Origin: Podarcis muralis
Lineage: Eukaryota
Assembly (NCBI RefSeq): GCF_964188315.1
Contig: NC_135667.1
Location: forward strand, 16,430,001-16,494,000
Direction: 5' to 3'
Length of the DNA stretch: 64,000 bases
Shown: in pieces, positions 39,262 to 51,484 of the stretch
Numbering within the stretch: the stretch's first letter is position 1
Layout: each line of letters opens with the position of its first letter
Notes under the pieces: generated by a model
The model's input: only the letters and a program-made list of their open reading frames with translations
What the model was told of the DNA's origin: nothing
Database searches by the model: none
Program-made: the position numbers and the translations under genes

Positions 39262-51484
<12,223 letters not shown>

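Follow-up and report, generated by a model that had tools for sequence, protein, structure and literature searches.

Can a Rab GTPase work as a regulated switch when the guanine-binding Asp of its G4 motif is replaced by Glu? This question is raised by a RAB35-like gene in the window, a 64,000-nucleotide stretch of Podarcis muralis DNA (NC_135667.1), whose G4 motif was predicted to read NKCE rather than NKxD. The Asp concerned is equivalent to Ras D119, and its replacement is a standard route to fast-exchanging or xanthine-specific mutants. Scanning the + strand, we found an intact gene of six exons at 39262-51484, with a spliced coding sequence of 609 nt for a protein of 202 aa. All junctions carry AG/GT. 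The exons and the residues under discussion are as follows:

39262..39316, + strand: exon 1, first half of G1 (ATG at 39262, GT donor after 39316)
47512..47562, + strand: exon 2, remainder of the G1 P-loop (its loose end is joined to 48876 in RNA X19, X23 and X24)
48876..48999, + strand: exon 3, switch I with the G2 Thr, and G3 DTAGQE with the catalytic Gln (RNA joint 48999>49291, GT..AG)
49291..49415, + strand: exon 4, switch II YYRN ... CKIL (RNA joint 49414/5>50569/70 in X19, X23 and X24)
49301..49303, + strand: AAC, Asn81 in switch II / RabF4 (YYRN; YYRG in canonical RAB35), read from the bases
50570..50694, + strand: exon 5, G4 and G5 (RNA depth 8-14; the sole base difference is a synonymous G>A at 50595)
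50575..50589, + strand: G4 N-K-C-E, then D (AAC AAA TGC GAG GAC), aligning to NKNDD of solved RAB35
50584..50586, + strand: GAG, Glu124, the guanine-binding Asp position (Ras D119), read from the bases, with no alternative letter in DNA or RNA reads
51356..51484, + strand: exon 6, alpha-5, polybasic tail and stop codon (RNA joint 50692/4>51354/6)

The G4 codons start 5 bases into exon 5, after an acceptor that ends in ...tcatcag and is followed by TGGGT. The predicted departures, NKCED in G4 and YYRN in switch II, were confirmed in the bases, and the motifs predicted to be intact are all present in the 202-aa protein: G1 GDSGVGKS, the switch I Thr of G2, G3 DTAGQE and G5 ETSAK. A polybasic stretch precedes the C-terminal di-cysteine prenylation motif (CC), as in the Rab35 subfamily.

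DNA and RNA reads were mapped on the window at 48800-51700. The exon 1-2 junction lies outside that stretch, and RNA supports every junction from exon 2 onward (three predicted GT..AG joints and the joining of the exon 2 end to 48876). The Glu124 codon is covered by X2 DNA contigs without any other letter. It is likewise unchanged in three sets of RNA data that come from other studies, namely X19, an RNA contig with a depth of ~149, and X23 and X24, stranded raw RNA-seq runs with a depth of 8-14 over exon 5. Seven exonic sites (48913, 48946, 49306, 49342, 49357, 49366 and 50595) distinguish the X23 and X24 runs from the window, in all reads at each site and synonymously in 7/7 cases; the animals carry a diverged haplotype, or come from a diverged population under the same species label. 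These data show that the gene is intact, spliced and transcribed. Its protein is identical to P0139, the RefSeq ‘ras-related protein Rab-35-like’ of Lacerta agilis and Podarcis. Within intron 5, the DNA contig depth rises to 27-50 over a background of ~14 at 51128-51321, where several contigs break with loose ends at 51198-51240, and 51275-51309 was skipped as repeat in read mapping. This segment, which closely precedes exon 6, probably represents an interspersed repeat.

The G1-G5 motifs (with G4 as a variant), together with RAB35 as the nearest relative in sequence, structure and tree, indicate that the gene encodes a Rab GTPase of the Rab35 subfamily. The best PDB matches of the window exons are RAB35, with E values of 1e-13 to 1e-21 per exon. 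The peptides of exons 4 and 5 have their best matches in the RAB35 chains 6ekk, 3tw8 and 6if2, which read YYRGTHG and VGNKNDDPERK and thus agree with the NKNDD/YYRG reference given in the original prediction. Pfam Ras (PF00071) is recorded for a protein identical to the window product. An AF2 model of P0139, based on an alignment of 50 sequences, has a normal Rab fold with a mean pLDDT of 78.5; the pLDDT is ~90 at residues 121-130, and its low values in switch I are expected without nucleotide. In a Foldseek search, the closest solved structures are RAB35, with a TM-score of 0.89 (normalised to target length) and 84% identity. Canonical RAB35 of human and mouse (6ekk, 3tw8, 6if2) is alike in its G domain (~84% identity), fold, G1, G2, G3, G5, polybasic tail and CC. 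In contrast, the window gene differs from it in G4 (NKCED vs NKNDD), in switch II (YYRN vs YYRG), in the sequence of the tail, which is KNSKRKKRCC in canonical RAB35, and in its locus.

A word search scored on exon 5 (in a surrounding open frame of 122 aa) was followed by a full-length search that used an ortholog as query, and each yielded a set of ‘Rab-35’ or ‘Rab-35-like’ proteins that all have YYRN and share a tail type. The set includes sharks, rays, chimaera, bichir, sturgeon, bowfin, teleosts, coelacanth and lungfish and, among tetrapods, caecilians, salamanders, frogs, turtles and squamates. In a maximum-likelihood tree of 58 Rab35 proteins, the window protein is placed with vertebrate RAB35, in one clade of 28 rows (support 100/99) that stands apart from canonical vertebrate RAB35. 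The assignment of the gene as a RAB35 paralog was borne out by this clade and by the best matches. The gene is a member of a gnathostome-wide sister clade of RAB35, which we name RAB35L. The only residue that separates all near-full-length RAB35L from all canonical RAB35 sequences is G81N in switch II, with YYRN found in 72/72 of the former and 0/96 of the latter. The RefSeq RAB35-like orthologs (P0139 in Lacerta and Podarcis, P0005 in Tiliqua, P0140 in sea turtles and P0153 in snakes) are at least 95% identical, read NKCE[D] and have the same synteny; the window gene falls among them without material difference.

The neighbours of the gene in the window are the following:

15012..31323 (approximate), + strand: upstream neighbour BICDL2 (open reading frames at 15012, 24868 and 30032; weak HAP1_N match)
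53341..56177, - strand: downstream neighbour HCFC1R1 (Pfam HPIP; L004 24080-26916, offset 29261)
59503..64000, + strand: downstream neighbour THOC6 (WD40), extending past the window end (WD40 gene from L004 30242)

In L004, the locus that corresponds to the window itself, BICDL2 is a called gene of 524 aa with Pfam BICDL2_C that ends at locus position 2062, equivalent to 31323 in the window. The open reading frame at 61703 matches THO complex subunit 6 (PDB 7apk chain F, E=1.2e-6). The gene order BICDL2, RAB35L, HCFC1R1 (minus strand) and THOC6 is found in the five lizard loci with identical protein and in gecko, snakes and sea turtles, and RAB35L of the great white shark is flanked by BICDL2 and HCFC1R1. 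Human canonical RAB35 presumably adjoins BICDL1. If this adjacency holds, the location of RAB35L beside BICDL2 would fit a duplication of the BICDL-RAB35 pair as a block, as expected of an ohnolog.

Birds, crocodilians and mammals had no RAB35L among the top matches or the listed cluster members, where these groups have canonical RAB35 only. This absence is consistent with a loss of RAB35L, in a search that was not exhaustive. Mammals seem to be without RAB35L, which may be why the protein is unstudied; our literature search found no study of a RAB35 ohnolog or its G4 motif. That the lizard itself has a canonical RAB35 is inferred only from the RefSeq ‘-like’ name and a UniRef cluster of identical RAB35 with the taxon Amniota. 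In some snakes, two RAB35L proteins with slight differences are listed on separate large contigs: Crotalus adamanteus has P0013 (R138W, on a 66-Mb contig) and P0153 (on contigs of ~145-151 Mb), Crotalus horridus has P0008 and P0169, and Erythrolamprus reginae has XP_070585645 and XP_070587216. These pairs may reflect a duplication in snakes, haplotypes or copies on sex chromosomes.

Codon comparison was limited to sauropsids and covered 11 loci from 11 assemblies: five lizards with identical protein (at least four of them at lacertid-level similarity), one gecko, three snakes and two sea turtles. One of the 11, L004, is the window’s own source and not independent. Each assembled CDS translates exactly to its annotated protein. 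The Glu124 codon is GAG in 11/11 loci, and the codons beside it vary synonymously (GGT/GGG, AAC/AAT, AAA/AAG and TGC/TGT). Pairwise dN/dS is 0.000-0.024 at a dS of 0.1-2.0, with synonymous sites near saturation, and one pair has 65 nucleotide differences and 0 amino-acid differences. RAB35L is therefore under very strong purifying selection, and the data show that Glu has been retained since before the squamate-turtle split. GAC or GAT at this codon, sought in orthologs and reads as a sign of a private variant or an error, was found in none; all squamate and turtle sequences seen have Glu.

Beyond sauropsids, both residues occur at the fourth G4 position of RAB35L. Among near-full-length sequences, Glu is found in 46/72 and Asp in 26/72 RAB35L proteins, whereas canonical RAB35 across Metazoa has Asp in 96/96 and Glu in 0/96; clade-V nematodes, seen in a separate search, are the exception. 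This distribution suggests that tolerance of Glu is background-dependent, or that the change is functional rather than neutral. Glu is present as NKCE in every squamate (~30) and turtle (~10) sequence seen, as NKNE in all three salamanders and in one medaka sequence seen, as NKNE or NKSE in all cartilaginous fishes seen, and as NKSE in one sturgeon sequence seen. Asp is present in RAB35L of caecilians, frogs, lungfish, coelacanth, bichir, bowfin and most teleosts. Parsimony requires at least 5 switches between Asp and Glu on both the gene tree and the conventional species tree, with neither residue singled out as ancestral. Each state is held in large, old clades with saturated synonymous sites, and neither drifts freely in RAB35L.

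Close RAB35L orthologs that differ at this position are otherwise ~91-95% identical; salamander and caecilian have 17 differences. Among the residues that change together with it in five contrasts, positions 156 and 164 change in 4/5. We rejected these two as co-evolving partners because the contrasts have reference taxa in common, both sites are freely variable in canonical RAB35, and their states are not the same from one contrast to the next. Within RAB35L, Cys as the X residue of G4 is limited to sauropsids (31/72). Two Vipera latastei predictions (P0058 and P0157) read NKCEH, with His in place of the Asp after Glu.

Two stray NKCED matches prompted a search with nematode Rab-35, which revealed that Glu is also found outside RAB35L. 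Clade-V nematodes (Caenorhabditis, Pristionchus, Diploscapter, Auanema, Heterorhabditis and strongylids) have NKxE in a RAB-35 of the canonical type with YYRG, and C. elegans RAB-35 (NP_499454, P0354) reads GNKCEE. Ascaris, Brugia, Strongyloides, Steinernema, Enterobius and other nematodes have NKADD or NKVDD, so that the Glu of clade V has an origin independent of that in RAB35L. Cys, at the position of Cys123 in the window gene (50581-50583), and Glu arose together independently in clade-V RAB-35 (NKCE). The nematode NKxE proteins have D, E, A, C or S after Glu, and an Asp next to it is therefore dispensable. About 10 Rab35 sequences of 208-217 aa derived from metagenomes or transcriptomes also read NKCED (P0261, P0267-P0270, P0279, P0282, P0287, P0291 and P0319), and Glu at G4 may exist in further invertebrate lineages.

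The C. elegans protein provides insights into how a Rab35 with this motif behaves. Its S24N mutant is dominant negative and Q69L fails to rescue, loss of the GAP TBC-10 keeps RAB-35 on phagosomes, and the flcn-1; rme-4 double mutant, which lacks both GEFs, equals the rab-35 null (PMC6107108). C. elegans RAB-35 is thus in vivo a switch that depends on GEF and GAP, genetically conventional despite NKCEE. It shares the Rab35 family and the G4 core NKCE with RAB35L, but clade-V RAB-35 is of the canonical type, has a variable residue after Glu and is the sole Rab35 in those genomes. A more distant precedent is the GD1 domain of bacterial EngA, where G4 is NKX[D/E] and reads NKCES in cyanobacteria and chloroplasts (PMC10448771). 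Like RAB35L, EngA/Der GD1 is a working GTPase with Glu fourth in G4 and, in cyanobacteria, Cys at X (PMC10448771). Unlike RAB35L, it belongs to another TRAFAC family, functions in ribosome assembly and has no Rab-type regulation.

Glu124 occupies the same structural position as the engineered and oncogenic D119 mutants of Ras (PMC8916776). In a comparison of sites across the human Ras superfamily, K117 and D119 show the highest conservation. Most substitutions of D119 in H-Ras are activating in Ba/F3 cells, and D119A is destabilised by ~25 kJ/mol with raised nucleotide release (PMC8916776). In a deep scan of KRAS, only 2 variants at D119 were transforming (PMC11526993). The characterised mutants D119A and D119N remove or alter the carboxylate, whereas Glu124 keeps it. 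In a survey of 298 PDB complexes, the dual hydrogen bond to guanine N1/N2 was commonly formed by Asp or Glu (PMC11594714). The literature searched yielded no data on D119E and no work that directly addresses Glu at this site in any Ras-superfamily protein.

Taken together, Glu124 probably represents a conservative substitution for the guanine-binding Asp, fixed and maintained by selection in the G4 motif of a RAB35 ohnolog that is functional. The Glu carboxylate would still form the paired hydrogen bonds to guanine N1/N2, like Asp or Glu in many guanine-binding proteins, and RAB35L would for that reason remain a guanine-specific switch under GEF and GAP control. Nucleotide affinity or off-rate would be retuned moderately at most. 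Asp and Glu may be alternative workable states in the Rab35 fold, each entrenched in its lineages; switches would be rare, and each state would then be held for hundreds of millions of years. Three considerations speak against this conservative reading. First, since D119 is highly conserved and most of its substitutions in Ras raise nucleotide release and destabilise the protein, the kinetic effect of Glu could be real, and a moderate effect on off-rate or stability is possible. Second, the contrast between 46/72 RAB35L and 0/96 canonical RAB35 with Glu points to a background-dependent tolerance or to a functional change. Third, the C. elegans precedent is a different protein, of the canonical type with YYRG.

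It was suggested in the original prediction that the Rab may be natively fast-exchanging, i.e. that Glu124 weakens guanine binding enough for spontaneous exchange that is largely GEF-independent. The activation of Ras by D119 substitutions, mostly through faster nucleotide release (PMC8916776), points in this direction, as does the confinement of Glu to RAB35L and one nematode clade, with none in the other 96 canonical RAB35; every RAB35L also has G81N in switch II. The precedents of C. elegans RAB-35, which is genetically GEF-dependent (PMC6107108), and EngA GD1 with NKX[D/E] (PMC10448771) make such a cycle less likely. In addition, Glu preserves the carboxylate, few KRAS D119 variants transform (PMC11526993), and the close identity of RAB35L orthologs with Asp and Glu argues against a radically different cycle. 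A fast-exchanging, GEF-independent RAB35L would thus be disfavoured by precedent, and we consider it unlikely.

A graded version of this idea is that the choice of Asp or Glu at G4 acts as a lineage-specific knob for the off-rate in the G81N background. The Glu lineages (sauropsids, salamanders and cartilaginous fishes) would then be faster-exchanging and less GEF-dependent, and the sauropsids redox-sensitive through Cys123. This proposal is speculative and quite unlikely; if true, RAB35L would be a natural fast-cycling Rab, kept by selection for more than 250 million years.

A change in specificity or a redox control is also conceivable. The Obg-like NTPases YchF/OLA1 have an NxxE G4 motif and prefer ATP; in these proteins the Lys is lost and the base pocket has diverged. 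Redox-sensitive behaviour has been proposed for Ras C118 and EngA Cys122, and Cys123 of sauropsid RAB35L might play a similar role in nucleotide exchange. Cys at X is confined to sauropsid RAB35L and clade-V nematodes, and Cys122 in the NKCES motif of EngA mediates a high-light, redox-linked growth response (PMC10448771). RAB35L does not resemble the NxxE-type ATPases, however: it retains Asn121, Lys122, the SAK of G5 and the rest of the pocket, and it shares 84% identity with RAB35 across the entire domain. In sharks, salamanders and sturgeon, Glu occurs without Cys. A shift away from guanine, or an exchange governed by Cys123, is therefore doubtful.

The original prediction also held that the adjacent Asp may compensate. 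In this case Asp125 would take over guanine recognition in a shifted register, with NKxxD as the motif. Asp125 is present in 69/72 RAB35L, including all Glu-bearing ones except the two Vipera latastei predictions. The same Asp is ancestral and equally common beside a G4 Asp (77/96 canonical RAB35), no insertion accompanies the change from Asp to Glu, and neither the variable residue in nematodes (E in C. elegans NKCEE) nor NKCEH of Vipera fits a required Asp. Such compensation is highly improbable, and the original interpretation was half right: the RAB35 paralog does depart from NKxD, and this departure is real and fixed; compensation was not upheld. A mistake in sequencing or assembly, a private allele or decay into a pseudogene with relaxed constraint can be rejected with near certainty, as we found no point in its support, and GAG in independent DNA and RNA runs and across 11 assemblies (including the window’s own, L004), the identity with the RefSeq-annotated P0139 of Lacerta and Podarcis, a dN/dS of no more than 0.024 and the presence of spliced RNA all rule against it.

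RAB35L presents a natural change from Asp to Glu, fixed and strongly conserved, at one of the most conserved residues of the Ras superfamily. Matched natural pairs, such as salamander and caecilian or lizard and lungfish, are available for the effect of Asp versus Glu on nucleotide binding by a Rab. The finding also warns against equating NKxE with a defect. Its practical outcome is a modest one, namely that annotation should treat the gene as encoding a functional Rab35-type GTPase rather than an aberrant one.
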